64,000 nt of DNA from positions 62,001-126,000 of the forward strand of contig MCFE01000100.1 of the NCBI GenBank assembly GCA_002104905.1. The letters are read 5' to 3'. This document shows positions 8,437-59,280 of this stretch, piece by piece. Within the stretch, counting starts at the first letter, position 1. Each line of letters opens with the position of its first letter. The notes beneath the pieces are model-generated. The model was given only the letters and a program-made list of their open reading frames with translations, had not been told where the DNA came from and ran no database searches. The translations under genes were made by a program, and so were the position numbers. Source of the DNA: Basidiobolus meristosporus CBS 931.73 (Eukaryota; Fungi; Basidiobolomycota).

Positions 8437-8450
8437 GGAACAAGTCTATT

Positions 8451-19768: not shown

Positions 19769-19798
<30 letters not shown>
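19769..19798. repeat. (AT)15 microsatellite
   Basis: Perfect dinucleotide run at the junction of two foldback arm fragments. Confidence 0.95.
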
Positions 19799-19801
<3 letters not shown>

Positions 19802-20559
19802 AAACATAGCTCTTGATCTTCATGCAAAGCAGCCTCTATGTTTTACTCATTGTGCTGGAGAAAATCCATCTTTTAACCTATTTTTTGGATCCATGTTGTG
19901 TAAGATGGGTACAAGCACAAAGAGACTGAAGACATGAATCCAATACTCAATGCTCATGGCACTGTGAACATAGCTCCTATGGCTTGTGTTAGGTTGCAAA
20001 AATGCATGGTACTATCTGGCACTATATCTAAGTTTTAGTCAAAAGTAAAACCTATACAAAGCACTTATTGTGCCAGATAGTAGCAGTGGACCATGATGGT
20101 GCCATGCATTTGTGTGACATGATACAAGCCACCGGAGCTAGGTTCAGAGTGCCATGGGTAATGAGTACCAGCTGCATGTCTTCAATCCTTTAGTGCTTTT
20201 ACACATCCTGTACAAAATTGATCCAAAATAAGGTCAAAAAATGGATTTTCTACCGTATAATGAGTGAGACACAGGGGCTGCTTTACAGGAATATGAAGAG
20301 TTATGTTTCACACTGTGTGGTCAATTTTAGATCTTCTATGCTGCTCTGGCACACAATGGCACTACTTGATGCTCATTGCACAATATGGCACCATCCAACA
20401 CAGCAAGTCTGTAAGTTTCAGTCCCATAGAATATTCACTGTAATTGGTTATCAGCATAAGTAGCTCCAAGTGCTATTCAACTTTGTGATTAACAGATTCA
20501 ACTCTATTAAGCATGTATCCACAACCATGCACATGACACATGACCTGTGTCTTGATTAC

Positions 20560-24880: not shown

Positions 24881-24924
24881 GTACCAGAGTGTAAATAGTT
24901 TTTTCCCCCAATGCTGGTGAATTA

Positions 24925-27900: not shown

Positions 27901-30900
27901 GGGGCCACATATGCCTGAGTGTACAATAGCCAATATTTTGGTGGTATTGATTCCTTCTGAGTACTTGAAACGTTGCCAAGCTTGTTTCCCATATGAACAT
28001 CCCTTACAAACATTCAATCTGATTGGAATTGAGTATTTTAGGCTCAAAACAAGCTGATTTTGCACCAATTGGCTCATTTTCTGTTCCCCTATGTGTCCTA
28101 ACCTCCTATGCCACGTCTCCCAGTTGGTTTCATCAGTTTCAGCAATGTTGACATACTCAGGTACAATGATCTTGCATTGTAACTTGTATATATTGTGATC
28201 TCTGATTCCCAAAGCTAATCTTTGTCCATTTTCACTCAATATTGAGCAGCTCAGCTTAGTAAAAACAAATTTCAGTCCCTGAGTAGTTGCTTTACTGACT
28301 GAGAGTAGGTTCTTAGCTATTCCAGTTACATAGAGTACGTCAGTCAGTTTTGCTGTTGTTGCCCCTGAGTTATCACTCATATTTAGTTGCATAGACCCAC
28401 TGGCAGTAGCTTCCAATGCAGAGTTATCTCCCAGATAAACCTTTCTTACGGGAATAGTCTTTAAGTTGCTGAAACAATCCTTTATACCACAAATATGCGG
28501 TGATGCACCAGAGTCAATATACCATTCATTACTTTGGTTACTTGCACTCTCTTTTACAGTTACAAATAACTGTTCATCAGTAGTTGTATAGTTTGCCTGC
28601 TCTAGCTTCTGTTTTTTGTCTGCTTGTTTCTTGTTGCATTCTCTTGCCCAGTGTCCTGGCTTTTTACAATAATTGCAGCAACCAGGTTTTCTTTGATTTT
28701 GTTGCTTTCCCCTCTTTCTGAGCACCTTTCTGAGCTGAATAAAGCATTATCATTGATTATCTCTGCTTGAACATTACATCTGAGTTCTTCATGGAGAAGT
28801 CTTCCTAAGACATAGTCTAAAGTCAAATTGTCTTATCTGCTTTCAAAAGAAAGCATGAGTGGCTCATACTTGTCTGGTAGGCTGCAAAGCAGACAGAGTA
28901 TCTTTTCTTCATCATCTACACCAGCATTAATACTGTAAAGTTCTTCTGCTAGTGTCTCCATTTTGGTATTGAGTAGTAGCATGTCATCATCTGGCTTCTT
29001 CCTCATGTTGAAGAACTTTTGTTTCATATAAAGCTTGCTTGATACTGACTTTGCTCTAAAGATCTTCTCTAAGGATTCCCATGCTGCTTTGGTAGTATTT
29101 GAGGCATAGATTTGTCCAATGAAGGAGTTTTGCACATTGATGCATATGGCATTGAAGGCCTTTCTCTTCTTCTCTTGAAACTTCTCCACATCTTCTGCTG
29201 TTCCTTTGGGCTCAACTTCCTTTCCTGTTACTTTGTTCCAAAGCTTTCTTTCCTCATGTGGATCTGCATCTTGATTCTCCAAAGTCTGTAGTTCTTCCCA
29301 TCAAACCTCTCCTTTACAGGGAAGATGTTAGTATTGCTTTGTTTGCTGGTAGAAGTCATCTTTAGAATAGATTAAGGCAATTGGGGCTCATAACCTGTTG
29401 CCATTTAAGAAGTGATTTGGATATAAGGAACTTATTAAGAAATAGTGATAATAGTTGAACTGTTGTTTATTCATAAAGAAGCTCAGTATTTATACCTTTG
29501 TAGAAGTAATACAGCTGCAACACTAAGTAGTGAGGGTTTCTCAATATTCAGGAGCATTGTGTAACAGTTTCAGGGTTAGTACATATTGTTTGGTAATACT
29601 GCTAATTTGATCCTGACTATAGGGGAATAATCATAAGATCATATATCTGGAGAAAGTGGCAAAGTTAAGGCAGTAAATGAGTCCTACAGTGACTAAGACT
29701 AGTCTAGAATTGTTAAGTAAATTTTTAGCTGCTGAATGAAGCCAAATAGTCCAATATTTCAACATGCACACCTTATGGGGGTCTTTTGGATTGGTAAAAC
29801 CTACTGGTTGCTCCATATATATAATTTCTATCAAATCCCCATTCAGAAAGGCTGTTTTGATGTCCATATGATGTAGATCTAGACTGTGTACAGCTGCCAG
29901 GGCTAGAACTGTTCTATTGGAGTTAAGCTTGGCAACCAGAGCAGGTGTTTCCTAAAAGTCTAGTCCCTGGATCTGGGAATAGCCTTTTACCACCAATCTA
30001 GCCTTGTACTTCTCAACAGTACTATATGAGGTTATCTTGGTCTTGTAGGCCCATCTACACCATACTTGCTTTCTCCCATTAGTATTTCTCTCATATCTGC
30101 CTGAATTAGGTACATATCTTCCTCATTAGTGTTGATTGCATCATCAGGAAGCTGGCCAATGATTCTGAATTCTCCTCAAATATAATGTCCCTGCTCTTGA
30201 TCAGCTTCTGGAATTTGCCATTATACACTCTATGCCCATAAGTATTAACACAATACCTATGAAAGATCCCTTTTCTACTCTTTGGTTCCTGCTTAGAGCA
30301 TTTTTTGTCAGGGATATCATAAAAGACACCGCTGCCAAATATCCTGAGGTGCTGTAGGTCTAGTTTCTTGCCTGTATATGCTTCAAAGAGTGTAGAATCT
30401 CCATGTGAAGTTGTTGGGCATCTATTCTTGATTAGTATTGTGGTAGCAACAGACTCAGCCTAAAACTTGTAGTCCTTTAACATATCATATAGCATAGGTC
30501 TTCCCCCATTGCTATTGCTCTATTTGCACATTCCAATAATCTGTTTTGTTATGGAGTATGTGAGCAGTGGTCTGTTGAAGTATACCAGGAGCTGAGCAGT
30601 ATTTTGCAAGCTCCTGTTAGCAGTATTCCTATATATTGTCACTTTGAGGTAATTTCAGTTTATGCTATTTTGTGCTTCTGCCATGTTCTTGAAGTGCTTA
30701 AACATCTCTCAACCCTAATCCATTGCTTTGAGGTAGTACACCCATGGGTATCTTGTCTTGTCATCAATAAACATCATTAAGCATCTCTGGACTCCTAAGG
30801 ACAGTGTTCTCATGGGTCCACATATGTCTAAGTGTACAATAGCCAATATTTTGGTGGTATTGATTCCTTCTGAGCTCCTGCAACATTGCCTAGCTTGTTT

Positions 30901-32335
30901 ACAATATCAACATCCTTTCCAGACACTCAATATAGTTGAAATTGAGTAATTTAGACCAAAAATAAGTGGATTTTTCAGTAATTGGCTTGTAATCTGTTCT
31001 CCAACATGTGCTAGCCTCCTATGCCACATCTCCCAGCTAGAACCATCAATTTTGGCAATGCTGACCTACTCAAATATAACAATCATGCATTGTAACTTCT
31101 TTGTATGGTGATCTCTGATTCCCAAAGCTAGTTTAGGTCTATTCTCACTCAATATTGAGCAGCTCAGCTTAGTAAGAATAATTTTCAGTCCCAAAGTAGT
31201 TGCTATACTCACTGAGAGTAGGATCTTTGCTATTTCAAGTACATAGAGTACATGAGTCAGTTTTCCTGTTGAAGCCTCTGAGATATCACTCCTCTTTAGC
31301 TGCATAGACCCACTGGTAGTAGCTGCCAGTGCAGAGTTGTCCCCTAGATACACCTTTCTTACAGCAATTGTCTTTAAGTTGCTGAACCACTTCTTTATAG
31401 CCCAAATATGTTGTGACGCCCCAGAGTCAATATACCATTCATAATTTTGGCTACTTGCAATCTCTCACAAGGTTACAAATAACTTCTCTGCAGTATTTAT
31501 ATAGTTTGCCTGCTCCAGTTTCTATTTTTCTGCATGTTTCTTCTTGCATTCTCTTGCCCAGCATCCTGGCTTCTCACAGTATTACAGCAACAAGGTTTTC
31601 TTTTATTTTGTTGCTCTCCATTCTTTTCTGTGTGCCTTTCAATGCTGAACTAAGCATTGTCTTCAATTGTCTCTGCTTGATCATTGTATCTGAGTTTGTT
31701 ATGGACAGGTCTTCCTTTGACATTGTGTAGGTCAAGTTGTCTTCTCTGCTTTTAAAAAAAAAGTATGAGTGGCTCAAACCTATCTGGAAGGCTACAAAGC
31801 AGACAGGGTATCTTTCCTTCATCATCCACAGCATATTTGATACTGTAAAGTTCTTTTGTAAGTGTCTCCATTCTGGCTATGGGTTGTAGAATGTCATCCT
31901 CTGGCTTCTTCCCCATGTAGAAGAACTTTCTTTTAAGTAAAGTATGCTTGATACAGACTTTGCTCCAAAGATTCTCTCCAGGGATTCCCATGCTGCTTTG
32001 GCAGTATCAGAAACATGAGCATGCCTGGTCAAGGAATCTTGTACATTGATATATACAGAATTAAAGGCCTTTCTCTACCTCTCTTGATACTTTTAACCTC
32101 TTCTGCTGTTGCTTTGAGCACCAATTTCTTTCCTGTTACAATATTCCAAAGCTCTATTTCCACAGGTTGGATATTCAACCTGACTCTCCAAAGTCCGTAG
32201 TTCTTCTCATAAGACCTCCCTTTTACAGGGAAGATGTATGTATTGTTCAGTTTAATGGCAGATGTCTTCTGTAAAATAGACTTAGGCAATTGGGGCTCAT
32301 TACCTGTTGCATTTCAAGAAGTGTTTTGGAGTATA
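24925..32335 (-). mobile_element. Old Ty1/copia family B element (3' LTR 24925-25290; RT/RNase H 25318-26405; 5' part 29765-32304; 5' LTR stub from 32305) hosting a younger copy
   Basis: PPT CTGCCCCTCAAC next to the LTR. RNase H ORF 25318-25899 (YDSSDW, STTNAEY). PBS GGTAATGAGCCCC at 32304. Both parts are heavily diverged from the younger B copies. Confidence 0.8.
26403..29764 (-). mobile_element. Younger copia family B insert: 5' LTR 29396-29764, PBS, gag-PR-INT-RT to codon KVC, then a 189 bp LTR fragment (26403-26591)
   Basis: PBS GGTTATGAGCCCC at 29395. ORFs 28833-29282, 27544-28725 (CNYCKKPGHWAREC, WYIDSGA, SDNGGEY) and 26592-27375. The LTR fragment is nearly identical to 29576-29764. 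Confidence 0.9.
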
Positions 32336-32478
32336 TGTCTATCACAGCCTCCATATCCTCCAATGCTGATGGAGTGGAGATCCAATGATAGACAAAGCAA
32401 CAAAGTTAAGTCCTCAAAAGGTTATTACAATGCATTAAGTGGGATTTTGCAACATTAATAGGGACACCAAGAGGTTGC

Positions 32479-35400
32479 TGTTGCAATTTAAGAAGTGATT
32501 TGGATACAAGGAACTTATCAAGAAATAATGCTAATAGTTGAACTGTTGTTTATTAGTAAAGAAGCTCAGTATTTATACCTTTGTAGAAGTAATATAGCTG
32601 TAACACTAAGTAAGGAGGGCTTCTCAATACTCAGGAGCATTCTCTAACAGTTTCAGGGTTAGTACATAATTGTTAGTATTAGTGATAATTTGATCCTGAC
32701 TATAGGTGAATAATCAGAGGATCATAGATCAGAAGAAAGTGGCAAAGTTAGAGCTGTAAATCAGTCCCACAGTGACCAAGACTAGTCCAGAATTGTTAAG
32801 TATATTTTTAGCTGCAGAATGATACTAAATAGTCCAATATTTCAACACTCCCCCTCAACTAAATAATTTCTTAATCCTAATTCCTCCCTGAGATTCTCAA
32901 GTTGTGGCCTAGCCAGTGGTTTTGTCAATTTATCTGCCACCATTTTGCTAGTAGGGCAGCACACTAACTCTACTAAGGTATTTTCTACAGCCTCCCTCAC
33001 AAAGTGATGCTGAATATCAATGTGCTTAGTTCTGGCATGATTAGTAGGATCTCTAGCTAATGAAATACAACTTTGATTTTCCTTGTAAACACATGTTGGT
33101 TCATCTGAATTAAAACCTAAGTCCTTGAATAATTTTTGTAGCCATATAGCCTCCTTAGTTGCTTTACATGCTGCCATATATTCTGCTTCAGTTGTATATA
33201 GGTCCACAGTTGGTTGTTTCTTGCAATTGCAAGTAATAGCTGCACCAGCATAAAGAAATACATATATTGTGATAGAGTGTCTGTCAATCAGATACCTACC
33301 CCAATTGGAATCACTATAGCCATCAAATTTTTGCCTATTAGCTGTTCCAGAGTATTCCAGTACCATACTTATGGTACCTTGTAGATATCTGAAAATCTGC
33401 TTAACTGCTGCAATTGGATCTGATCCATAATTTTGCATAAATTGACTCACTATTTCAACTGCCACTGCAATATTGGGACATGTAGGCACCATCAAGTTCA
33501 TTAGGCTACCAACAATTGATTGATTGGGACCATTTTGGTCCATATTTGAACTGTTTTCATCTATAACTGGCTGAGATTTGCTTAATTTCAGGTTATTGTC
33601 CATAGGGGTACCTGCAGGTTTGCAATTTTCCATTTTGAAGCATCTAAGAATGTACCTGATGCTCTTAGATTGTTGAGCACGATTTTCTGCGTAGGTATGT
33701 CAATTTTGACCTCAAATCCAAGAAAATAGCTCAATTTTCCAAGATCTTTCATATCAAACTTGCTGAAGAGATCTGATTTTGTCTGTTTTAGTGCCTCTTG
33801 GTCTCTTGTAGCTATAGTTAGGTTGTACACATAAAGAACCAGGATGATCACACCCTTTTTGAGCTGTTTCACATATATACTGTGACATGCAGTGCTACAA
33901 GAAAACTCAATTTCCTCTAGATAGGTGTCAATCTTGTAATACCATGCTCTAGGTGCCTGCTTAAGCCCAAAAAACAATTTTCTAAGCTTGCACACCTTGT
34001 GGGGGTCTTTTGCATTGGTAAAACCTTCTGGTTGCTCCATATATATAGTCTGTTGAAAATCCCCACTTAGAAAGGCTGTTTGATGTCCATTTGGTGTAGA
34101 TCTGGACTGTTTACAGCTGCCAGGGCTAGAACTGTCCAAATAGAGTTAAACTTGGCTACTGGAGCAAATGTTTCCTTAAAGTCTAGTCCCTGGATCTGGG
34201 AATAGCCTTTAGCCACCAATCAAGCCTTGTACCTACCAACAGCACCATTTGAGGTTATCTTGATCTGGTGGACCCAACTACATCCTATTGGCTTTCTCCC
34301 ATTTAGTAAAACTACCTGTTCCCACGTTTTTGCCTTGATCAGTGATTGGTACTCCTCCTGCATGGCTTGTTGCCATATAGCAGCATCTGGGCTCTGCATT
34401 GCCTGTTGCAGATTCTGAGGTTTGACACATAAGGCAAGATAAGCTTCTTCATGATCATTTTATGTCTGCCACCAGGATCCAAGGGCCTTTCTTATTCTGG
34501 TAGATCTCATAAATGGGATAATCTGTTCTGATCTGGAACTGGTAGAAGTATCTTCCGTATCTGACTGGATTTTGTTTGTATCTTCTTAATTAGTGTTGAT
34601 TGCATCATCAGGCAGCTGGCCAATGATTTCTGTGGCTTTCTGATCTGAATTCTTATCAAATACAATGTCCCTGCTCTTGATCAGCTTCTGAACTTTGCCA
34701 TCATACACTCTACACCCTTTAGTATCTTCAATATACCCAAGAGAGATCCCTTTCCTACTCTTTGGTTCCAACTTTGAGCGTTTTTGACAGGGATGTGATA
34801 AAAAACATCACTGCCAAAGATCTTGAGGTGCTGGAGATCTGGTTTTTGCCTTTATATGCTTCAAAGGGTGTAGAATCATGTAGTGCTGTTGTAGGGCATC
34901 TGCTCTTGGTGTATGCTGTGGTAGCAATAGATTCAGCCCAAAACTTGTAGTCCCTTTCCTTATCATGTAGCATAGATCTTCCCATCTCTACTATTGTTCT
35001 ATTTGCATGTTCTGCTACTTCATTTTGCTGTGTAGTATGAGGAACTGTGGTCTGTTGGAGTATACCAGTAAACAAGCCGTATTTTGCAAACTCATTTGAA
35101 CGGTATTCCCCTCCATTGTCACTTTGTGGTACCTTCAATTTATACCCAGTTTGTGTTTCTGCCATGTTCTCAATGTGCTTAAACATCTCTAAAGCTTCAT
35201 TCTATGTTTTAAGGAAGTACACCCATGTATATCTTGTTTTGTCATCAATAAACGTCACAAAGTATCTCTTGGCTCCAAAGGACAGTGTTCTCATGGGGCC
35301 ACATATGTCTGAGCTTACAATAGCCAGTATTTTGGTGGTATTAATGCCTTCTGAGCTTTTGAAACATTGCCTAGCTTGTTTGCCATATGAACATCCCTTG

Positions 35401-37368
35401 CAAACATTCAATTTGATTGGAATTGAGTATTTTAGGCCCAAAACAAGCTGATTTTTCACCAATTGGCTCATTTTCTGTTCCCCAATGTGTCCTAGCCTCC
35501 TATGCTATGTTGCTCAGTTGGTTTCATCAGAGTAAGCAATGTTGACATACTCAGGTGCAATGATGTTGCACTGTAACTTGTCTATATTGTGATCTCGGAT
35601 TCCCAAAGCTAATTTTTGTCCATTGTCACCCAATATTGAGCAGCTCATCTTAGTGAAACAAATTTCAGTCCTTGAGCAGTTGCTTTACTGACTGAGAGTA
35701 GGTTCTTAGCTATTCCAGGTACATGGAGTATATCAGGGAGTCTTGCTGTTGTTGCCCCTGAGCTATTGCTCATATTTAGTTGTATAGACCCACTTGCAGT
35801 AGCTTCCAGAGCAGAGATATCTCCCAGATAAACCATTCTCATGGGAATAGTCTAAAGTTGCCGAGTCACTCCTTTATACCATAAATATGCTGTGAGGCTC
35901 CAGAGTCAGTATACCATTCATTACTTTGGTTACTTGCACTCTCTTGTATGGTTACAAATAACTGTTCATCAGTAGCTGTATAGCTTGCCTGCTCTAGCTT
36001 CTGTTTTTTGTCTGCTTGTTTCTTCTTGCATTCTCTTGCCCAGTGTCCTGGCTTTTACAATAATTGCAGCAACCAGATTTTCTTTGGTTTTGTTGCTTTC
36101 CCTTCTTTCTGAGCACCTTTCTGAACTGAACAAAGCATTATCATTGATTATCTCTGCTTGAACATTACATCTGAGTTCTTCATGGAGAAGTCTTCCTAAG
36201 ACATAGTCTAAAGTCAAATTGTCTTCTCTGCTTTCAAAAGAAAGCATGAGTGGCTCATACTTGTCTGGTAGGCTGCAAAGCAGACAGAGTATCTTTTTCT
36301 CATCATCTACACCAGCATTGATACTGCAAAGTTCTTCTGCTGGTGTCTCCATTTTGGTATTGAGTAGTAGCATGTCATCATCTGGCTTCTTCCTCATGTT
36401 GAAGAACTTTTATTTTAAGTAAAGCTTGCTTGATACTGACTTTGCTCTGAAGATCTTTGCTAAGGATTCCCATGCTGCTTTTGCAGTACTTGAGGCATGG
36501 ATTTGTCCAATGAAGGAATCTTGCATATTGATACATATGGCATTAAAGGCATTTCTCTCCTTCTTTTGAAACTTCTCCACCTCTTCTGCTGTTCCTTTGG
36601 GCTCAACTTCTTTTCTGTTACTATATTCCAAAGCCTCCGTTCATCAAGGTGGATCTGCATCTTGATTCTCCAAAGTCTGTAGTTCTTTCCATCAAACCTC
36701 TCCTTTACAGGGAAGATGTTTGGGTTGTTCTGTTTGCTAGTAGAAGTCATCTTTTGAATAGATTAAGGCAATCAGGGCTCATAACCTGTTGCAATTTAAC
36801 AAGTGATCCGGATATAAGGAACTTATCAAGAAATAGTGATAATAGTTGAAGTGTTGTTTATTAGTAAAGAAGCTCAATATTTATACCTTTGTAGAAGTAA
36901 TACAGCTGTAACACTGAGTAAGGAGGGCTTCTCAATATTCAGGAGCATTCTGTAACAGTTTCAGGGCTAGTACATATTGTTAGTACTAGTGCTAATTTGA
37001 TACTGACTATAGGGGAATAATTATAAGATCAGACTTGTTCTATCATTCCAGCTGATGTTAGTGCCCAATAGTGCCATAGCATGCCAGATGGTGCCTGATC
37101 ATGCCATAGAGTGCCAGATGGTGCCATACAGTGCCAATTTGGGATCAAAATTGACATGCATATGACCCTAAAATATTAAATTAATAACAAAATATACAGC
37201 ACTTTCTGGCACTATGATCAATGGCACAATGGAACAAGTCTATTATAGATCTGCAGAAAATGGCAAAGTAAGAGCTGTAAATTTGTTCCACAGTGACCAA
37301 GACTAGTCCAAAATTGTTAGGTAAAGTTTTAGCTGCGGAATGATACCAAATAGTCAAATATTTCAACA
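32479..37368 (-). mobile_element. Full-length Ty1/copia family B element (LTRs 32479-32847 and 36787-37368, the latter containing a MITE), TSD GTTGC
   Basis: GTTGC at 32474-32478 and 37369-37373. PBS GGTTATGAGCCCT at 36786; PPT CTCCCCCTCAAC at 32848. Broken gag-pol ORFs 32842-36750. Confidence 0.96.
37031..37241. mobile_element. 211 bp PHIS-type MITE inserted in a copia B LTR
   Basis: TIRs AGACTTGTTC/GAACAAGTCT, flanks ATC/ATT. The empty LTR site reads aagATCatagatc. Reverse complement of the 3552 copy. Confidence 0.95.
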
Positions 37369-38329
37369 GTTGCAGCACTACTTCAAGAGCAGTACTCTAG
37401 AAAGTGCACTTGATTATTGCAAAGACTTGCAGATGAGATGCTGGACCTTGCAGTGCTGGCTGAAGGCCAGGGCATATGCAAACCTGTGTATGAACAGTAG
37501 CATAGAGCCATAAGATTCTTGCCAAAGTCATGGAAACAAAGTGTTACAGTAGAAACACTTATTGGGTGGTGGATCTCAACAGAGTTACATATTGTGTGTG
37601 CATGTTAGTGTAGGTTATAGGGACTTAAGTAGGCAAATACAATTGTAATTGAGTTTAAACTGAGGTTTCAATGGAAATAAATTGATTTGTACACATAAAA
37701 AGTAAGAGAAATGGTTGAGTCAGGAAGTAAGGGGTGTGAACAGGAGGCAATAGCCAATCAATGCACACAAACATAGGAGGCAATAGGGTGTCTGGGACCA
37801 GAAAGTGATAATATTAGCAGAGAACCAGTCAAAAGCCACTTATGTATTGTTTGATGAAAAATTTTGACTATGTTTTTTGTGAAAGCTGGGGTGCAATTAC
37901 TTTCTGATGGTCTTTGTGCAGTGTCCTGATATGATTAATACCTCTCAGTCACAGGACTTGATATTTGTGACAGCCTTTTGACAGTTCCCTTTACCATTCC
38001 CTTAATTGCTGCTATGTCTTTTACTGCTACTTTGTGTGAGTGCATCCTGTATTGAGCTAGGTTTTCTTCTTGCTAAATGCTGCTCTGATGCATATATTTT
38101 GGCCTGCTTGTCCCTTACTGGCATGCTCTTGCCAGCCTGATATTTTTTTTTGCTTGTTTAGAGCTCTCAGCCCTGGTTGAGATGGACTTCTGAGCTCTCC
38201 TCAGCCTTCTGAATATGGCATGCAGAGTGATAGCTCTGAAGTACAAGGCTCACTGATTGGTAGTGAGCATATCACTCCTAACAACCGTACCCTGCATGAT
38301 CCTGGCAAAATCCCAATATGCAATGAGAC

Positions 38330-41173: not shown

Positions 41174-41307
41174 AATAGACTTGTTCCATTGTACTGTGCC
41201 AGGGCATGTGGCACAATCCGTAGATTCAAAGAACAATTGGGCACAAAATTGTAGCTACCAATAGGCAGGATTGCTCTTTGGCAATTTTGCACCGTGTGGG
41301 ATGATCT

Positions 41308-41656
41308 TGTTGTAAGAGTCTTGGAGATATTGGAAGTGATTTGGAGAACAAGTAGATTATGTGGTTTTCACTTAATGATTTATTGAATGTAAAAGTAGTA
41401 TTTATACTTTTACCTGGTCTTGGCATTACAAACACGTAGAATAGGTTAAGGAAGGTCCGAAGAACATGTGTGCAAAGTTTGGGGCTGTTTGGACAACTTT
41501 GAGAATTTTCATGTTCTGGGTACCTGGAATTTTGGTGAAATTATTCCAAGTAAATCCCAACAAGGAATTTGGTCAGTATTCTCTAGGATTTGAAGGTGAT
41601 GATCTAAGTGACTAAGTTAGGTGAATATTTAGGTGGAAATACAAATTCTTACAACA
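41308..41656 (-). mobile_element. Solo LTR of copia family A, TSD GATCT
   Basis: 349 bp TGTTG...CAACA. GATCT at 41303-41307 and 41657-41661. Nearly identical to the LTR at 54058-54406. Confidence 0.97.
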
Positions 41657-41753
41657 GATCTTGCACACTATGGCACATTCTGACACAATGAGGTTGGCAC
41701 AAATGATTGCACCCACTTGTAATGTTTGCATCACGTGCGCAATCAGATACTGC

Positions 41754-42824
41754 TGTAGTGGGGTGACAGTGACACCCACTGACAGATGTGCTCATTCCCT
41801 TATTTTCTACTTCCCTATATCTCTACTACACTTATTTTAGTTTTATCCCATTTGTCTTACCCAATCAGTACTATCCCATAAGCTGGTTGACTATCACACT
41901 TGCTTACCTTATTGCATAAGTTACCCCTTACTTTATGTAAGATTACTAGCTAAAAGTGCTACTATATTAGGCAAGTACACACGCCAGTACCTGTGACATA
42001 TGATCAACCCATGTCACCATCCCTACCATTTCCATACCATATATGGTATCCCTATGTTACACAGGTTTTAGAGTACTGATTCCTGATTGGTTGGATGTGC
42101 TGTGCCTCTTAGAGCCTTCCAGGACCTACCTAGAACATTCTTAGGTTGTTCTGATGTCATTAAGATTTCTACTGATAGCCGGAACCTTCTAGAACGCCAT
42201 GATAAATAATCACTTAGCCAGTAAGAAAAGTATATAAGGGAGGCTATCCCTCAACAATAAATCATCATCCCTTTTATCAATATTCCAACTTGTTGATTAG
42301 TGTGATCACTGCTACCTGCTGTTACCTGAACTTCCAACCCTAGACCACAGGACACTCCCAGGAAACCGTGCTGACAGCCAACTGACCTTGGAGGCACTAC
42401 TTGTGAGGGATACTCAGAGTAGGTATCTTTTATTATATTTGATTCTTTCCCAAGTTTGTTCTTGTACAGCCAAAGATACTTTTCTGTATTTGTAACTATT
42501 GACCACAGCTGCATTCTTATCAAGTCCCTGCTGGTGGAGTTTACTGTTATTTTGACTTTGGAAGCTTTAGTATATTGTCATCTCAAAGAATGCTGAACCC
42601 AGCACATACTTTTGTTAAGACGCCAACTAAGTTGGGGATTGTAGCTCAATAGTTTTCCCTTGACAAGCTTGTGGCTTTATTCCCCTTCACATTAGATTAG
42701 AGACAGAACCTAAGTATTCCTAGCAAGCTTTTGCCAGAGGTTATTGCACCCAGTGAACACCCCACACACAAAACACTTAAGAAGTGCTGGACATATCTCT
42801 CCCTTGAACCTATACACCACCACA
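41754..42824 (+). mobile_element. Solo 1071 bp gypsy-type LTR
   Basis: TGTAGTGG...CCACCACA; colinear with and the same length as 52390-53460. No PBS or PPT next to it and no clear TSD (ACTGC/CCACT). Confidence 0.88.
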
Positions 42825-43461
42825 CCACTATTATGGTAGGTAAACTCTGGTATTTGGATATGTTTCTTTAATGTAAATGGAAATAAATGCATACCACACT
42901 ATACACTACACTGATACTTACCATTTTGGGTACCATCCCTCCAATTGGATGGTATCACAGTGGTTAATTGATCCAAGAGTTTCCTGAAGCTGTCAGCCCC
43001 CAATTAGCTCTTTGACAAATACACAAGCTACCTGGTTTGCCATCAAATATTCCATTTTGCCCATTAAGCAAGTAAGTCCCTGATCCTAGTGATTGGACAA
43101 GGTGTCATAGCTAGCATGTGACCAATTGTATGGGTGCAAATCAGATCAAATAGCTGCACTGGTGCCACAGATGATGTATACATATGCAGGGTGTTTATTT
43201 ATAGGGGTCCTGTCTCAAATGTGAGACAACCTTAATATTGCTCATATTAAAAATTTAGTGATCACTGATTTGCAATGCTCAATGCAGATTGCAAAAAAAA
43301 TGCGTTGTTTGGATCATTACAAATAATAGCAATTCAATGCAATTGCATCATCTTCTCCTAGGCTTTTTTCCAACAGGGATTACTACTGAAGTACTTGGTA
43401 GTGATTCACTTTGCACACCTAAGCTACTTTCTTGTTGACTATCCTCTTGGCTACTTGTGTA

Positions 43462-44386
43462 TTAGTAGTCAGTATTTTGCCTCCTAGTTGATGAGTGCAA
43501 TGCTGCAGCTTGGCCACACTGGATTGCTCCAGATGATGCAACTGAACTGGCCTGCAGTGCTATGTGCTGACATGTTCTTTTACTTGCCAAAGGCTCTGGT
43601 GGTGGAGGTACTTCATGTGGGTCATCATCCGTCAGTTCACCAGAAGAAACTTGCTGATGGTCAGGTGTAATGGCATGTGCAACACAACTTGATGCGCTGG
43701 CATGGCCCTTGGCTGAGTTTGATGTGATACCGCTTGTTGACACAACTTGGCCTGCTCCAATGGACTTATGTCTTTTTGAGCAGTTTGGCAGGTTCTGGTG
43801 GTTTTGCCCTGAAGCACACACATTGACCTGATATGCATTGAGTCTATGCAGGGTGCTCTTATGAAGGGTGCTGGTGTAGTTTGGACTGATGTGCGCTGGC
43901 ATGCTGAAGTTGCTAGGGATGGTAAGGAATCCAGCAAGGCATGCTGACACAATCTAGACAATGTTGCTTGCGGTCTGTATTCTCCCTCTTGAAGCTCACC
44001 TTCTGATTCCTCAAGGTATGCACTTACCCTCTGTCAAATACTTTGCAACTGTTGCCTGGATGAGTCCTGTGTATATTGCTTCAGAAGCCATTTAGCTCTA
44101 CTAATATTTCAGGTAATACATTAGCCATTTGAGGCAAGAGCTCATTCAAAATCTCTTTAGGTCCCAAAGTCAAGGCACAAACGGATGCATCCAGCCCATA
44201 CTGTGCTAATTGTGTGCAAAATTGTTCCCGCATGGCTTCCTCATCAAATCCTCTCACTCTCAGCTCATTCTTGATTTCAATACTTGTCTTGTTATATATC
44301 CTCTTACATACATCTGCTGGCATCTTGATGTAGAACTCATGCCACATCTTTCTACTCAGGTTCTTCCATCTCTGTTGACTCTCCAA
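43462..44386 (-). pseudogene. Second ORF of the PHIS element, apparently frameshifted or with stops
   Basis: ORF pieces 44081-44386 (MESQQRWKNLSRKMWHEFY...), a linking frame (WLLKQYTQDSSRQQLQSI*QRVSAYLEES) and 43632-43961/43462-43950. Divergent from the transposase and inside the TIRs. No domain recognised. Confidence 0.5.
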
Positions 44387-44951
44387 GGTATCTAGCTCTG
44401 CTGGATTAATGAGTAGTGCCTAAGTATCTGTATGAAGGCTGATCATAAACACTTGGGCCATACTAAAATCATTTGGCAAGAACTTGAACAAATCTGACAT
44501 TGCCTTTTCCAGTCCAGACCATGCTTGTGAGCTGGGGGATGGGTTTTGTCTGGGTTGAACTAATGATGAGTTTAGACTTGGTATAGGGACCATAGTTATG
44601 GACTTGGATACCTATGCAGTAGTGTATTGGCATTAACCTGGTCTTATATGATATATATATGAAAACTAATGTGATTGTTGAATTTTCCATACATTATGCA
44701 TGATGCATCTTGGATTGCATTGTCACAGATCAGATCACATCAATTGCAGATTTCCTATTTGATTATGGACCTGTGAGTAAAACATCAATAAAAATACCCA
44801 GTCATTGTTTGAGGATGATGTTTGCAACATAATGATGGGATACATGACATTTGATGGAGATTTAATCATAATGCATGGAAAATCAGATAAATAAAGCTGA
44901 TTGCGCCAAATCAAATCTAATCATCTCAGCCCAATCCTTACCAATTCTAAT

Positions 44952-45836
44952 ATGACTTACTCATCTGAATGGTCTTTTCTCATCAATCCCATCACTACCA
45001 CTGGATTTCCTTTTGACACACTAGAGGAGATCTATACCAAGTACTATGGTCCATTTACCCCAATCTACTCAAGGAGATCCCTTCTTAAGCTTCTCTTCTA
45101 TTACAAGAACTATTGCCCTACAAGGTTTCATCCCACCATCCATGGCAACAACAGTCCTAGAAGCTTTCATTCCCAGCTGACAGCAATGGAGAACCACCTT
45201 GCAGGGGGTATGAATGACTTAGAGCAAGCTTGGAGTACCAGGTTTAGAAGCTCCAATAGACATCCATATCCCAGAGTGTTCAGCAACAGGTTTCATATAA
45301 GGAGTATTTTGGATACCTTCCCAGTCAGGATTAACAGACCTTCTAGAGGGCAGAGGAACTTTTATTCTGGCAAGTACCAGGCACACTGTGTGAAGTTTCA
45401 AGCACTGTCTGATATTGAGGGTAACATCATCTGGTTTAGTGGGCCATTTGCTGGAAGTAGGCATGACAAAGCACTCTGGGTAGTGAATCATCCTGAATTC
45501 AGTAGAGGGGAAAAATGTATGGCAGACTTAGCTTATATAGCGGAGGATTGTCAGAGATTAGGATGTATTACAGCTTATAGGAAGCCAAGGAATGGTGTGC
45601 TTAGCAGGAAGCTGAAGCTCTACAATGAGATATTTAATCATTTCAGAGTGAGGGCAGAGCATACATTTGGATATCTGAAGAGATTCAGCATATTGGCAGG
45701 TAAATACAGAGGAAAGTCATATGTAGGAGAAAACAGCAGAATAGGTAAAATAGTTAAGATACTTATCAATGAACAGTATATTCATACAAGAAGACATCCA
45801 CTGAGAGAAATGTATCTGGAGCATTATGAAGAGTAA
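44952..45836 (+). CDS. PIF/Harbinger-type DDE transposase (DDE_Tnp_4-like), 294 aa, uninterrupted
   Basis: Motifs ILDTFP, FYSGKYQAHCVKFQ, GPFAGSRHD, MADLAY and YNEIFNHFRVRAEHTFGYLKRF give the D-D-E triad of HARBI1/PIF-like transposases. First ATG at 44952; the ORF track starts at an upstream TTG (44901). Confidence 0.9.
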   Translation: MTYSSEWSFLINPITTTGFPFDTLEEIYTKYYGPFTPIYSRRSLLKLLFYYKNYCPTRFHPTIHGNNSPRSFHSQLTAMENHLAGGMNDLEQAWSTRFRSSNRHPYPRVFSNRFHIRSILDTFPVRINRPSRGQRNFYSGKYQAHCVKFQALSDIEGNIIWFSGPFAGSRHDKALWVVNHPEFSRGEKCMADLAYIAEDCQRLGCITAYRKPRNGVLSRKLKLYNEIFNHFRVRAEHTFGYLKRFSILAGKYRGKSYVGENSRIGKIVKILINEQYIHTRRHPLREMYLEHYEE

Positions 45837-46059
45837 ATAAAGCAAGGAAACACTACTCTGAGCAACATAAGTAAGATTGAGTAAAATTACCAGTAACTAT
45901 AACATACCACTGGCATGATGGTAGAAATTATAGAGCCAGATAGTGCCAAATTGATCCGGCACTATAAACAGGCTGGTACCATGTGGCACTATCCAACAGA
46001 ACAAGTCTAATATGTTACAATGGTAAAAGCTCCTGCTACTCTAGCTTGCAAGGTGCTTC

Positions 46060-52380: not shown

Positions 52381-52389
52381 TGCCATTGG

Positions 52390-53833
52390 TGTAGTGGGGT
52401 CACAATGACACCCACTGACAGATGTGCTCATTCCTATATTTTCTACTTCCCTATTCCTCTACTACACTTATTTTAGTTTCATCCCATTTGTCTTACTTAG
52501 TCAGTACTATCCCAAAAGCCAGCTGACTATCACACCTGCTTACCTTATTGAATAAGTTATCCCTCACTTTATGTAAGATTACTAGCTGTAAGTGCTTCTA
52601 TATTAGGCAGGTACCCGTGCCAGTACCTGTGACATATGATCTACCCATGTCACCATCCCTACCATTTCTATACCATATATGATATCCCTATGCTACACAG
52701 GCTTCTGAGTACTGATTCCTGATTAGTTGGATGTGCTGTGCCTCTTAGAACCTTCTGGGACCTACTTAGAATACTCTTAGCTCATTCTGATGTGATTAAG
52801 ATTTCTACTGATCTCTGGAACCTTCTGGAACACCATGATTAGTATTCACTTAGCCAGTGAGAGAAGTATAAAAGGGAGGCAATCCCTCAACAATAAATCA
52901 TCATCCCTTTTATCAATAAGCCAACTTGTTGATTAGTGTGATCACTGCTACCTGCTGCTACCTGAACTTCCAACCCCAGACCACAGGACACTCCCAGGAA
53001 ACTGCATTGACAGCCAACTGACCTTGGAAGCACTACTTGGGAGGAATACTCAGAGTAGGTATCTTTGATTATATTTGATTCTTTCCCAAGTTTGTTCTTG
53101 TTCAGGCAAAGAAACTTTTCTGTCTTTGTAACTATTGACCACAGCTGCATTGTTATCAAGTCCCTGCCGGTGGAGTTTACAATTGTTTTGACTTTGGAAG
53201 CTTTAATGCAGTGTCATATCAAAGGACACTAAACCCAGTACATACTTTTGTTAAGACACCAACTAAGTTGGGAATTGTAGCTCAATAGTTCTCTCTTGAC
53301 AGGCCTGTGACTTTATTCCCCCTCACATTAAATTAGAGACAGAACCCAAGTATTTGTAGCAAGCTTTTGCCAGAGGTTATTGCACCCAGTAAGCACCACA
53401 CACGCAAAACACTTGAGAAGTGTTGTATGTATCTCTCCCTTGGACTTATACACCACCACATATTTGGCACCCAATGTGGGGGGATTCATACAAGCTCCTT
53501 AGGACCCAACAAGATGTATCTGTAAATTTGAGCCATTGTCCACTTATTGAAAAGAGACTACCAATACCATCAAGATTACAACACCAACCTACCTACCCAG
53601 AATGAACTCTATGCCATTACCACTCTCACATGGAGCTCCACAGTTTGATGGAAGAAATATGGAAAGCTTCATATTCCAATGGGAGAAGCTCTGCAAGATG
53701 TGCAGCCTATCTGAACAAGAAATGGCTGAGGACTTCCCCTACTACTGCACCAAAGATATTACCACTAAGCTTCTCAGACAAAGTGACATTCTCACTGACT
53801 GGGCCTTAATGAAGACCTACCTACAAACCAAAT
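52390..53833 (+). mobile_element. Gypsy element 5' end: 1071 bp LTR (52390-53460), tRNA-Lys PBS (53465-53481), gag start (53602)
   Basis: TGGCACCCAATGTGGGG equals the tRNA-Lys PBS TGGCGCCCAACGTGGGG with both CpGs decayed. ORF 53602-53841 has a gag-like APQFDGRNMESFIFQWE. Interrupted by copia at 53834. Confidence 0.85.
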
Positions 53834-56800
53834 TGTTGTAAGAGTCTTGGAGATATTGGAAGTGATTGGGAGAACAAGTAGATTATGTGGTTTTCACTTA
53901 ATGATTTACTGAATGTAAAAGTAGTATTTATACTTTTACATGGTCTTGGCATTAGAAACATGTAAAATAGGCTAATGAAGGTCCCAAAAACATGTGTGCA
54001 AAGTTTGGGGCTGTTTGGACAGCTTTGAGAATTTTCATGTTCTAGGTACCTGGTACTTGTTGCAAGAGTCTTGGAGATATTGGAAGTGATTGGGAGAACA
54101 AGTAGATTATGTGGTTTTCACTTAATGATTTATTGAATGTAAAAGTAGTATTTATAGTTTTACCTGGTCTTGGCATTACAAACATGTAGAATAGGTTAAG
54201 GAAGGTCCCAAGAACATGTGTGCAAAGTTTGGGGCTGTTTGGACAACTTTGAGAATTTTCATGTTCTGGGTACCTGGTATTTTGGTGAAATTATTCCAAG
54301 TAAATCCCAACAAGGAATTTGGTCAGTATTCTCTAGGATTTGAAGGTGATGATCTAAGTGACTAAGTTAGGTGAATATTTAGGTGGAAATACAAATTTTT
54401 ACAACACTCCCACTCAGCTAAATGTCCATACTGACTAGTCGTAATTTTGACCTAAGATATTCAAACTTGTCTCTAGCCAATGGTTTGGTAAATATGTCTG
54501 CAATCATTTCATCTGTAGAACAGTTAACTAAGCTAACTAAGTTATTCTCTATAGCTTCACGTATGAAATGATGTCTAATATCTATGTGCTTGGTTCTAGC
54601 ATGAAAAGTTGGATTTCTACCTAATTGTATACATCCTTGATTATCTTGAAATAAAGTAATAGGCGTTTTTTGACATAGGCCTAAATCTGCAAAGAGCTTT
54701 CTTAACCACATTGCTTCTTTTGTAGCTTCACAGGCTGCAATATACTCTGCCTCTGTAGTAGAAAGTGCTACGGTTGGTTGCTTTCTTGAATTCCATGAAA
54801 TTGCTCCTTTACAGTAAAGAAAGGTGTATCCTGTGGTGGATCTTCTGTCTTCCAAATTTTGTCCCCAATCAGCCTCAGAGTATCCCACAAGATCCTGTTC
54901 TGAATCCTTATAAGTGTATCTTAAGCAGATATCAGCAGTTTCTTTTAGGTATCTAAAAATCCGCTTAACTGCTGCAATATGATCAGATCCATAATTCTGA
55001 TTATGTTGGCTGACAACTCCCACTGAATATGAGATATCTGGACGTGTTCCAAGCATGCTATACATCAGACTGCCGACCATAGATTGATAAGGAAAGTCAG
55101 GGCTTTCAGATGGCACCAAGCTCTCTTGATTTGGTTGAGTTTTGACCAAGTTAAGGTTTGTCTCCATTGGGGTAGCTGCCGGTTTACAGTCTTCCAGTTG
55201 GTACTTCTTTAGTATATCTTGAATATACTTGGATTGGCTTATGGTGATAGTCTGGGTACTTCTGTCTATGGAGAACTTAATCCCTAAGTAGTAACTAAGT
55301 TCTCCTAGATTGGACATCTTGAACTCCTTAGATAGGCTAGATTTAGTCTCTTCCAATGTTTCTAGGTTATTGGCGGCTAAAATAAGATCATCCACATATA
55401 GAGCTAATAGAACTGGATTTGCTCTATCTGGCTTATAGTATATACTATAGTCAGCATTACTCCTTTTGAAACTCAAAGATTCCAAATAAGAATCTATCTT
55501 GCAATTCCAGGCTCTTGGTGATTGTTTGAGACCATATAGTTACTTTTTAAGCTTGCAGACCAAATGGGGGTTATCTTGGTCAACAAACCCATCAGGCTGG
55601 TCCATATACACGTCCTCATCAAGTTCTCCATTCAAAAATGCAGTTTTTACATCCATTTGATGAATAAAAAACTTATATTTGGCTGCAATAGCCAATATTA
55701 ATCTGATGGAATTAAACTTGGCTACCGGTGCAAAGGTCTCAGTATAGTCAAGTCCTTTTGTTTGAGAGTATCCTTTGGCTACAAGTCTTGCTTTGTATCT
55801 TTCAATTGTACCATCAGCCTTGTATTTTGTCTTGAAGACCCATCTGCATCTAATTGATTTTTGGTTGATTGGTAATGTGGCTAAGTCCCAAGTTTGATTT
55901 TCCATCAGGGCCTGATATTCCTCAGTCATTGCAGATCTCCAAAACTTCATCTGAGGGCTATTTAGGGCCTCTTTTACAGTCTGGGGTTCATCAATATGGA
56001 CTGAATAGGCATAGGCTAAGTTTGTGCCCTCATTGATATAGTAATTTGGGCTATTTCTTGTCTGATTGGATCTCCAGGCATTTGATACTGGAATGATCAC
56101 TTCTGGGATATTCCTGGGCACTGATTCAGGCTGAGCCACAGTTGTAGAGTCCTCTGGAGTAAAAAAATTTTCACTGTTTTACTCTGACTCAATCCTGACA
56201 ATTGGTGGACTTGAGATCAAATTTTTGTCATTATCTGATGTCATTTTTTGTGAAAGTTTTGAATTTTCCTCAAACAACACATCCCTGAGCTTGATTAGCT
56301 TCTTTGCTTTGGTATTGTAGAGTCTGTATGCTTAACTCTTATTGCAGTAGTCCAATAATATGCATTTTACACTGTTTGGCTCAAATTTTGACTGATTTCT
56401 GGGCAGATTCTTGGCATATGCTGTACATCCAAATATTCTTAGATGTTCTGCACTTGGTCTGTATCCATACCATGCTTCAAATGGAGTAGAATCAAAAGTA
56501 TTCTGTTATAACTCCTGTTTTTAAGGTATACAGCTGTGGCAACTGATTCCACCCAAAAATCATAGGATAATTTTTGATCATGGATCATAGATTTTGCCAT
56601 ATCAATTGTTGTTCTGTTTGCATGTTCTGCTACTCCATTTTGCTGTGGGGAGTATGGTACAGTAGTCTCTTGCTTTATCCCATGAATTTTGCCGAAGTGG
56701 ATGAAGAGTTTTGAGGTATATTCTCCACCAATGTCAGAGTGTATTTTCTTGATTTTTTCACCAGTTTCTCTCTCCACCATGGCTTTAAACTCCCTAAGCT

Positions 56801-58739
56801 TAGACAGAGCTTCTTCCTTTCTCTTCATGAAGTAGACTCATGTGTATTGTGTATAATCATCAATAAAAGTGATTAAATACTTCATCCCGCCTAGGGATAA
56901 ATTTTGCAAAGGTCCACACAGATCTGAGTGAATTAGATCTAATTTTTCTTAGTTTTAATTAACCCAGAGCTCTTGAATGGTTGTCTGGCTTGTTTCCCAT
57001 ATATGCAGGCTTCACAGTGCTCCAAATTAGCTGGGGGACCAATTTTTACTCTGGAAATTAGCTGATCTTTGATCATTTTGCACAAATAATCATAGTTGAT
57101 GTGTCCAAATCTCCTGTGCCAAAGTATTGGTGTCGCTTCATTTAAGTTACTTATATTGGCTTCCAAATGTGATGGAATATAAGTCAACTTGTATAGATTC
57201 TGATCTCTGATACCCAAAGTAATATGGGCACCATTTTGATCAGTGATCTTGCATCCAGAATTGTCAAAGCTGAAACTGAGTTCTTCTGCAGTGGCCTTGC
57301 TTACAGATAGTAGGTTCTTGGCTATTTCTGGTACATAGAGTACTTCTTTGAAGGTCAGTGTATGGGTTCCTTCACTGCTTCTTAGATTTACTTGGATAGT
57401 TCCTTCTCCCACTGCATCAAGTGTTCTATTGTCACCTATGAAAACCTTCTTAATTAGAATTTCTTGATATTGGGTAAAAAGTTCTATTTGGTGTGTAAAG
57501 TGTTGAGATGCTCCAGAGTCAATATACCATGTCTGAGAATCCTTGTTTGTGGTCATATATAGTGCAGGTATGAGTAGTCTTTCTTCAGTTGTTGCAGCAT
57601 TTTCATGTTCAGGCTTCTTTTGCTGATTATCTTTCTTTTTGAAGCACCAGTCTAATATGTGTACTTTCCTTTTGCAGTAGTTACAAAACAGGTTGCTGTT
57701 ACCTTTGTAGGGTCTTGGGTACCTCCTTTGTTGGTTATCATTGCTTATTAAAGCATTTTCTTCTTCCTTCTTATTTGGGCTTGATTTTCTTAATTCTTCA
57801 TCCAGGAGCCTTCTATATATGTAATATAAGGTCAAATCTTCAGTTCTGGTCTCAAGGGCTGATACAAGGCCCTGAAACTTGTCTGTCAGGCTATTCAGGA
57901 TGGTAACTATCACATCCTCATCAGTAGTTGGTACACCCACAGATCCCATTTCATCTACCAGCAGGGAAATTCTGTTAATTAGATTTTTCATTTCTTCTCC
58001 TAGTAGCATCTTTGTAGTAAAGAATTTTTGTCTCAGATACATTTTCTGAGCAGCTGAACATGACTGGTAGGTGTCTTCTAATGCCTTCCAGGCATTCTTT
58101 GTCATTTTTGCTCTTGAGCATTGAATTAGCAATTTGTCCTTGACATTAAGGCAAATGCAGTTAAAGGCACTTTGTTCTTTCTTCTGGTACTTTAAGGCTT
58201 CCTCTCCCACATTTTTTGGAGGGTATTCTTCTCCCATGACAATATCCCAATGGCCTCTTTGTTGTAGCAGCATCTTCATCTTCACCTTCCACACTTGGTA
58301 GTTAGATCCATCCAACTTTTCAGCAGAGTGAAATATTCCAGTAATAGCAGTAGTAGACATTGCAGAGAGTGACAGCTTGGGGCTCATAGCCTGTTGTAAG
58401 AGTTTTGGAGATATTGGAAGTGATTGGGAGAACAAGTAGATTATGTGGTTTTCACTTGATGATTTATTGAATGTAAAGTAGTATTTATACTTTTACATGA
58501 TCTTGGCTTTACAAATATGTAAAATAGGCTAATGCAGGTCCCAAGAACATGTGTGCAAAGTTTGGGGCTGTTTGGACAACTTTGAGAATTTGCATGTTGT
58601 AGGTACCTGGTATTTTGGTGAAAATATTTTAAGTAAATCCCAACAAGGAATTTGGTTGGTATTCACTAGGATTTGAAGGTAATGATCCAAGTGACTAAGC
58701 TAGGTGAATATTTAGGTGGAATTACAAATTTTTTCAACA
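53834..58739 (-). mobile_element. Copia family A chimera: partial LTR 53834-54057, full LTR 54058-54406, PPT, best-preserved pol, PBS, 5' LTR 58392-58739
   Basis: Long ORFs 54418-55485 (RT/RNase H), 55540-56139 and 56939-58435 (gag-PR). PBS GGCTATGAGCCCC at 58391. No TSD found. Confidence 0.93.
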
Positions 58740-59280
58740 TATTCAACATAAGATGAACATACTGCACTGTGTATCTGAGCTCAAATGAGATACCAATAGT
58801 ATCCTGCTGACTCATATCACTGATGAGGCCAAGACATGCAGCCAGCATGTGAAGATTGAAGAGGTGAAACTGTCACAGTCACTGATCATCACACAAAAGG
58901 TGATAAAAATACAACCTGCCTGTGAGATGGTGATCTTGTAAGAGACACCCATAGCTTGTTTGACAAATGAGTATATGATAACCCCAACAAAGGTATTGGA
59001 CCATCTAGTAGGAATCTCAGTCCTTAAAGCATCAATACCACCAAAATTTGAAGAGCAAAGCTTGAACTGCTTAGTAGTTAATCACATACAATGCACAGTG
59101 ATACTACCTAGAGGAGTGTTGTTGTTGAACATACAAGAAGTTGACGGTAACAACCAAGTACCACCTACAGGCAAAGAGCCAAAAGAGGAGCCCCCTGAGC
59201 TGGATGTGGACCCTGGTCCACCTCCTGTGCTACAGGATAAATACCTAGAAGGAATACACCCACCTGTCCATGTATTCTCT
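58740..59280 (+). pseudogene. Possible continuation of the interrupted gypsy gag
   Basis: Open stretch including ORF 58960-59355 on the same strand as the gag at 53602. No diagnostic motif; assignment is positional only. Confidence 0.3.

Follow-up and report, generated by a model that had tools for sequence, protein, structure and literature searches.

A Pangu/Harbinger2-like PHIS transposon with an open transposase frame and two families of miniature elements in Basidiobolus meristosporus

This analysis concerns a transposable element at positions 41177-46008 of a 64,000-nt (64-kb) stretch of the genome of the fungus Basidiobolus meristosporus CBS 931.73 (GenBank contig MCFE01000100.1, positions 62,001 to 126,000 of the forward strand). 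We refer to the full 64,000-nt stretch as the window; positions are counted from its first letter, and all in-window counts cover it alone. Taken as a whole, the evidence makes it very probable that the element is a cut-and-paste transposon of the PHIS superfamily, most likely of the Pangu/Harbinger2 group, and that two families of miniature inverted-repeat transposable elements (MITEs) ride on the same machinery. The groups of PHIS are defined by the target duplication that they produce: 5'-ANT-3' for Pangu, TWA for PIF/Harbinger, AT for ISL2EU, and none for Spy; Nuwa targets CWG or C|TNA|G (Han et al. 2015, PMC4482050). Pangu, which is Harbinger2 in Repbase (PMC12730594), averages 3487 bp and has ends of 11-40 bp that usually start with AG or GG and two open reading frames (ORFs), the second usually without a recognizable motif (PMC4482050). 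Every testable defining feature of Pangu/Harbinger2 is present or borderline in our element, and those of PIF/Harbinger, ISL2EU, Spy, and Nuwa are absent.

The element is 4832 bp long. It opens with AGACTTGTTC at 41177-41186 and closes with the reverse complement at 45999-46008, and these exact inverted ends of 10 bp can be extended to an inverted repeat of 26 nt at 81%. Direct reading of the flanks gives an exact AAT duplication, with the left copy at 41174-41176 and the right copy at 46009-46011. An earlier sequence-only reading of the window had proposed these coordinates, a size of about 4.8 kb, 10-bp terminal inverted repeats, and the AAT duplication, and all of them were exact on rereading; its estimate of about 3.4 kb without the nested long terminal repeats (LTRs) was reproduced by removing the two nested repeats described below, which leaves a backbone of ~3.4 kb. 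The terminal inverted repeats expected of a PHIS element are thus present, and their motif recurs elsewhere. The window holds 10 exact copies of the 10-mer AGACTTGTTC, where ~0.1 would be expected for a 10-mer, and these form five convergent pairs (3552/8447, 8451/9184, 17448/18179, 37031/37241, and 41177/46008), which bears out the proposal that four nonautonomous elements have the same ends as the coding one. When up to one mismatch is allowed, the end motif has 13 matches against a shuffle mean of 5.9, and 13 was reached in 0 of 100 shuffles. In a self-comparison, the part of the main element that lies outside its nested repeats and ends (42825-45980) is unique in the window.

Read on each end's own strand, the outside triplets of the 10 exact ends include AAT five times, ATT twice, ACT once, and ATC once; A-N-T is found at 9 of the 10 ends in this window sample, and the outermost base is A at all 10. 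The claim that all flanks are ANT therefore stands at nine ends and fails at one, the ATC at 37028-37030. Because the left and right flanks agree in only two of the five elements, we checked the length of the duplication independently at two paralogous-site comparisons. The first concerns the 211-bp element at 37031-37241 (MITE-A; flanks ATC/ATT), which sits in a repeated unit with four MITE-less paralogues near 25166, 26465, 29638, and 32721. The four empty sites read AAGATC and then ATAGATC or ATATATC, and the filled site reads AAG-ATC-[MITE]-ATT-ATAGATC, so that the site has gained 3 bp in addition to the MITE, and a C has become a T in the right copy. The second concerns a reverse solo LTR (3252-3551 and 9188-9235) in which two elements interrupt the same triplet. 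At this triplet, nine further copies of the LTR read ATT once (AAT on the plus strand of the window), and the doubly hit site reads AAT-[MITE-A with nested copia-type element]-ATT-[MITE-B]-ATT, that is, three triplets for two insertions. A single substitution explains this arrangement: MITE-A would have duplicated AAT, the right copy would have changed to ATT, and MITE-B would then have duplicated ATT. By both comparisons, the net gain per insertion is exactly 3 bp.

A canonical PIF/Harbinger element whose TAA/TTA duplication had been misread by one register would leave similar flanks. There is a T outside the left end at four of the five elements and an A outside the right end at all five, so a shifted register, with GACTTGTTC as the end motif, can look like T-A-N-T-A. 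The shifted 5-bp direct repeats match at only 2-4 of 5 positions, however; the empty paralogue of MITE-A predicts GATCA where the right flank is TATTA; and three triplets at the doubly hit LTR are what two 3-bp duplications would leave. The proteins agree with this, in that the element gave neither a Plant_tran match nor a Myb/SANT partner and the HARBI1-type anchor proteins introduced below are distant from its transposase. We regard a misread register as very improbable.

One further description of the ends was tried and rejected. Like the 5-bp T-A-N-T-A register just mentioned, a model with 13-bp ends that include AAT/ATT and no duplication fails at two places, the paralogous site of MITE-A and the doubly hit LTR. 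As a separate observation, the LTR consensus CTACTTGTTC adjoining the doubly hit triplet (3549-3551, 8448-8450, and 9185-9197) matches AGACTTGTTC at 8 of 10 positions, and MITE-B landed directly beside the end of MITE-A. Insertion at a shared triplet next to an end-like sequence could be due to chance or to a target preference of the kind known for some bacterial insertion sequences. For the main element, a paralogue near 20984-21010 with a single AAT can be aligned to both flanks, but on the left only 15 nt match, and weakly, and we did not count it as evidence.

The transposase gene lies at 44952-45836 on the plus strand and, as claimed beforehand, is open throughout its 294 aa. The protein has the IS5/Harbinger-type DDE core that defines PHIS (Pfam DDE_Tnp_4, E = 4.6e-21; DDE_Tnp_1, E = 4.1e-7), with D121, D172, D192, and E236 in place; a Pfam search of the 294 aa returned no match to Plant_tran or to any non-DDE domain. 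HMMER, run in full against 1.84 billion representative proteins, retrieved 1015 relatives at E ≤ 1e-3 and only 13 at E ≤ 1e-30. The closest of these, P0001, is 60% identical and is likewise 294 aa long, and the short length is therefore normal for this family of transposases. The four acidic residues are invariant in a 22-sequence family alignment, and the window transposase agrees with its relatives at 46 of the 52 columns conserved at ≥80% among them. Among the six departures is H166F, where 20 of 21 relatives agree; P0001 has four departures. From the sequence, then, the frame is open and shows mild signs of drift.

How such a frame stayed open in this genome may be explained in part by its composition. 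The observed/expected ratio of CpG is 0.16 over the window, a strong depletion, and only one CpG occurs in the 885 bp of the transposase ORF (0.03), all 28 of whose Arg codons are AGA or AGG. The dominant mutation process of a CpG-depleting genome thus has little to hit in the frame, and this near-absence of CpG may be part of the reason that the frame survived.

This point bears on the idea that the 294-aa frame is a domesticated HARBI1-like gene that serves the host and is not part of a mobile element. Such a gene could remain open while the remainder of the copy looked old, as it does here with its nested LTRs and fragmented second ORF, and P0001 is a relative of equal length. Nevertheless, the gene is enclosed by exact inverted ends and a target duplication, and the MITEs have these ends too; its 6 departures in 52 conserved columns, H166F among them, exceed the 4 of P0001; and a sequence with one CpG and only AGA or AGG for Arg gives the prevailing mutation process little to act on. 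We find domestication hardly credible.

No relative of the transposase was found in the PDB. A metagenome scan with a 7-sequence alignment returned seven contigs of 1.2-2.6 kb, none of them with a full element or usable inverted ends. Many relatives are longer than the window protein at their C termini. P0011 has a chromodomain in its C-terminal extension (Pfam Chromo, E = 9e-11), an extension that the window protein lacks, and nine others (P0002, P0008, P0009, P0010, P0013, P0015, P0016, P0027, and P0047) have a conserved, W- and V-rich tail of ~60 aa that is Tudor- or chromo-like by eye and that gave no Pfam match in the four of the nine proteins that were run. These extensions suggest that part of the transposase family may insert under the guidance of chromatin.

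To place the transposase among the PHIS groups, we used bacterial IS5 transposases from annotated plasmids and three HARBI1-type proteins, one of them the "nuclease harbi1" of Lasius niger, as reference anchors; the latter came from a word search with the family alignment, which found only four family members and these three proteins. Over the DDE core, the family profile scored 96.6 and 91.1 bits against bacterial IS5 versus 43-51 bits against the HARBI1-type proteins. In a tree of 121 DDE cores, whose reference sequences were these IS5 and HARBI1-type proteins, the HARBI1-type anchors fell on a separate branch with a Shimodaira-Hasegawa-like approximate likelihood ratio test support of 100. 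The top matches of the window protein include a 32-row clade that contains the bacterial IS5 anchors (support of 97), and the window protein itself groups with P0001 and P0151 (support of 99). The HARBI1-type anchor P0168 matches Plant_tran and HTH_Tnp_4, whereas the window protein and its relatives do not. The transposase therefore did not group inside canonical Harbinger or with HARBI1, a grouping that the sequence-only reading had named as fatal to its own proposal, and the view that it is not of the canonical HARBI1/PIF type is supported by these comparisons. Nor is it a member of IS5 by the NCBI threshold, because it scores 42 bits against a cutoff of 140 for the NCBIfam model transpos_IS5_4.

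With Pangu/Harbinger2 the element has in common the 3-bp 5'-ANT-3' duplication (AAT/AAT at the main element and A-N-T at nine of the ten ends), AG ends, the ~3.4-kb backbone, a transposase close to bacterial IS5, and a layout of two ORFs, a DDE-only transposase and a motif-less second frame that is fragmented in the main copy. It differs from Pangu in its 10-bp exact end, its one ATC target, and its host: Basidiobolus (Zoopagomycota) is not in the 2015 list (Han et al. 2015, PMC4482050). Among fungi, Pangu is already known from ascomycetes and basidiomycetes (Tuber, Talaromyces, Melampsora, Puccinia, and Tremella). With canonical PIF/Harbinger and HARBI1 it shares the DDE_Tnp_4 core, a 3-bp duplication, two genes, and MITEs (as with Tourist, mPing, and Pong), but its flanks are AAT, ATT, ACT, and ATC and not TAA/TTA (TWA), and no Plant_tran, HTH_Tnp_4, or Myb/SANT match was detected. 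ISL2EU is characterized by a 2-bp AT duplication, THAP/HTH, and YqaJ, and here the net insertion is 3 bp and no THAP or YqaJ match was found. Spy makes no duplication, and these insertions add 3 bp relative to paralogous empty sites. As for Nuwa I and II, no flank is CWG or CTNAG, and there is no Myb/SANT match. The resemblance to bacterial IS5 (e.g., ISCysp19-like elements; transpos_IS5_4) consists of ~31% identity over the DDE core and of the A-N-T target, which Han et al. reported for IS5 elements; the present element differs in being eukaryotic and larger, in having a second gene, and in having MITE derivatives.

What was first proposed as a Pangu-like PHIS transposon thus holds with respect to the superfamily, the A-N-T duplication, the AG ends, the 3.4-kb size, the two-ORF layout, and a transposase that is not of the HARBI1 type; the match to Pangu in particular is one to its published description. 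The further suggestion of an undescribed family can be kept only in the sense of a new family within a known group, and a "huge expansion" of PIF-Harbinger elements in Basidiobolus has already been published (PMC5751038).

In an alternative reading, early-diverging fungi would have an IS5-proximal PHIS lineage of their own, and the element would be part of this new group, which would have only the A-N-T duplication in common with Pangu. Bacterial IS5 transposases reach about double the score of the HARBI1-type proteins against the family profile, only 13 of the 1.84 billion representative proteins match at E ≤ 1e-30, and the likeness to Pangu is one of description and not of labelled sequence, in a superfamily whose deep branches have low published support. 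Han et al., however, define the groups by their duplication and place Pangu beside bacterial IS5 in the published PHIS tree (Han et al. 2015, PMC4482050), and the element matches on both counts; its size, end motif, and ORF layout fit Pangu as well. We consider a separate lineage improbable, and an assignment to Pangu/Harbinger2 remains the most likely one.

The four noncoding elements that have the ends of the main element fall into two families. MITE-A is represented by the 211-bp copy at 37031-37241 and by a second copy that is split into 3552-3756 and 8442-8447 (flanks AAT/ATT) by a copia-type element at 3757-8436; the two copies are 92% identical. The span 3552-8447 had been taken for one element, and it is instead a 211-bp MITE-A interrupted by a 4.68-kb LTR retrotransposon. 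MITE-B is a foldback element whose arms are 90-91% complementary. It has one copy of 734 bp at 8451-9184 (arms 91% complementary; flanks ATT/ATT) and one of 732 bp at 17448-18179 (88% identity to the former; flanks ACT/ATT). Three decayed relatives of MITE-B, at 18421-19008, 19133-19374, and 19798-20410, have 70-77% identity to it and degenerate or truncated ends. The last of these has an intact right end flanked by GTA and not by A-N-T, and a (TA)n microsatellite (19770-19797) abuts its truncated left side.

Both families are short and noncoding and have the ends and the duplication type of the coding element, as is expected of MITEs and as in other foldback or Tourist-like elements. They differ from these in what they have in common with the coding copy, namely, 16-28 terminal nucleotides and GTGCC motifs. 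The right end of the main element finishes in 28 nt that recur unchanged at both ends of the MITE-B copy at 17448-18179 (a 27-bp match to the end of this foldback at 18179 had been noticed earlier), and the left end begins with 16 nt that recur unchanged at the 37241 end of MITE-A. MITE-A and MITE-B are therefore not simple deletion derivatives of the coding copy, and since only 28 and 16 terminal nucleotides are shared, their partnership with it rests on the ends and on short motifs. The motif in question is GTGCC/GGCAC, which occurs 2-6 times per 105- to 120-nt end versus 0.13 times per 100 bp in the remaining window. It lies at positions 20, 34, and 64 of the left end of the main element (41177-41307, plus strand), which comprises the 10-bp inverted end and a subterminal region, and at positions 20, 47, and 62, counted inward, of the right end (45837-46008, minus strand); its place at position 20 is thus common to the two ends, and MITE-B has it there as well. 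These recurrences make the GTGCC motifs candidate protein-binding sites.

Together, these features suggest a mechanism. The 294-aa DDE transposase, probably with the protein of a partner gene in the opposite orientation, would recognize the AGACTTGTTC ends and the GTGCC(A) motifs that repeat within the first ~100 nt of each end. It would then excise the element and reinsert it at an A-N-T trinucleotide through cuts staggered by 3 nt, whereby the trinucleotide would be duplicated. MITE-A (211 bp) and MITE-B (732-734 bp) would be noncoding riders moved in trans by the transposase of the family. Directly shown are the sharing of motifs, the transposase family, the host, and the ends with their 3-bp duplication and A-N-T bias; binding to the GTGCC motifs, the need for a partner protein, and trans-mobilization of the MITEs are what we infer.

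The putative partner gene (ORF2) occupies 43462-44590 on the minus strand. It had been described as a single second ORF, and what we find are three stop-free pieces of 56, 112, and 162 aa, split by an in-frame TAG and a frame change. The first piece (44590-44423; 56 aa) is followed by the TAG at 44422-44420. The second (44419-44084; 112 aa) ends in a TGA, with the frame changing near 44092, and the third (43950-43462; 162 aa) is Ser/Thr rich; a donor-like GTAAGT site lies near 44021. When the pieces were searched separately against Pfam, with no joined model, nothing rose above threshold, the best hit being Phage_integr_3 at E = 0.07-0.09. A Myb/SANT, trihelix, or MADF domain of the kind that accompanies canonical PIF/Harbinger transposases gave no Pfam match at E ≤ 10 in these pieces of an ORF that is fragmented in this copy. 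The 112-aa piece had no relative in the PDB, the look-alikes of ORF2 in the Atlas are integrase fragments with few shared features, and a single-sequence AlphaFold model was poor (predicted local distance difference test score of 54). The CpG ratio of the ORF2 region, 0.09-0.14, is near the background of the window. A non-Myb fold for the partner is hinted at only by these weak look-alikes, which correspond to N-terminal parts of tyrosine integrases. Its combination with a separate IS5-proximal lineage outside Pangu and with a possible preference for end-like target flanks, as at the doubly hit AAT beside CTACTTGTTC, is a composite to which we attach a low probability.

The state of ORF2 also bears on whether the main copy can move itself. 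The copy looks old because the 1074-bp repeat nested in it has diverged by 10% from its paralogue and because ORF2 is fragmented. In addition, two solo LTRs have inserted into its left part, and its transposase differs from the family at 6 of 52 conserved positions. Judged from these features, it is probably old and no longer autonomous, and its autonomy is doubtful. The proposal of a candidate autonomous partner for the MITEs is thus questionable for this particular copy and not for the family, and it is likely that the family rather than the main copy was the source of the transposase that moved the MITEs.

Several observations weigh against the overall interpretation as a Pangu/Harbinger2 transposon with MITE riders. 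The three HARBI1-type anchors, all ant HARBI1-like proteins, are closely related among themselves, and the labelled references in the tree came from IS5 and HARBI1-type proteins, not from Pangu, Nuwa, ISL2EU, or Spy. The exact inverted end is 10 bp long, as opposed to the 11-40 bp published for Pangu, unless it is extended to the 26 nt at 81%. Flanks are identical on both sides in only two of the five elements (AAT/AAT at 41177-46008 and ATT/ATT at 8451-9184), with one mismatch between left and right flanks in the other three, and the ATC at 37028-37030 is a target outside the pattern. No uninterrupted paralogous counterpart of the site that the main element occupies turned up in the window. 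Beyond the 28 nt in common with MITE-B and the 16 nt in common with MITE-A, no similarity between the main element and the MITEs rose above shuffled controls, and the window contains only one coding copy. Finally, two or three short introns could join the pieces of ORF2, which would then be intact after all.

An assignment to Pangu/Harbinger2 would extend this little-studied type to a zoopagomycete fungus. The window offers a compact example, in which one coding copy and two MITE families occur together with candidate binding motifs and in which paralogous empty sites back the 3-bp A-N-T duplications, and it should be of use in annotating the very repeat-rich Basidiobolus genome and in choosing copies for transposition assays. 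The understanding of how such elements work is unchanged by it.

Two repeats are nested in the main element. The first, at 41308-41656, is a 349-bp copia-type solo LTR that begins with TG and ends with CA; a 5-bp duplication of its own, GATCT, flanks it (41303-41307 and 41657-41661). It is 98% identical to 54056-54406, and the same LTR bounds the 4.68-kb element at 3757-8436. The second, at 41751-42824, is an LTR-like repeat of 1074 bp with TG...CA ends and, by self-comparison, 89.8% identity to 52387-53460; no clean duplication was found around it on reading both junctions. The 4.68-kb copia-type retrotransposon has two copies with 349-bp LTRs in the window, at 3757-8436 (5-bp duplication GGAAC) and at ~54056-58742. 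The former has only broken ORFs, on the minus strand, with a match to Retrotran_gag_2 (E = 4e-39) and an RVT_2 fragment. Solo LTRs of this element are scattered at 2637, 12175-12478, 16242-16590, 41308, and 53833.

The region that supplies the empty paralogues of MITE-A, 24900-37400, consists of several diverged tandem-like units of ~3-4.5 kb with 60-96% mutual identity. Toward the right edge of the window lies a host gene for a Pumilio-family RNA-binding protein (60766-62337, minus strand), whose ORF is, over its full length, 100% identical to part of an 813-aa protein of B. meristosporus CBS 931.73. This match confirms the host; the next best one is in B. ranarum, at 75%. Because the matched protein is 813 aa long, the ORF is one exon of a larger gene. 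This stretch is richer in GC than the rest of the window (51-54% versus ~39% elsewhere).

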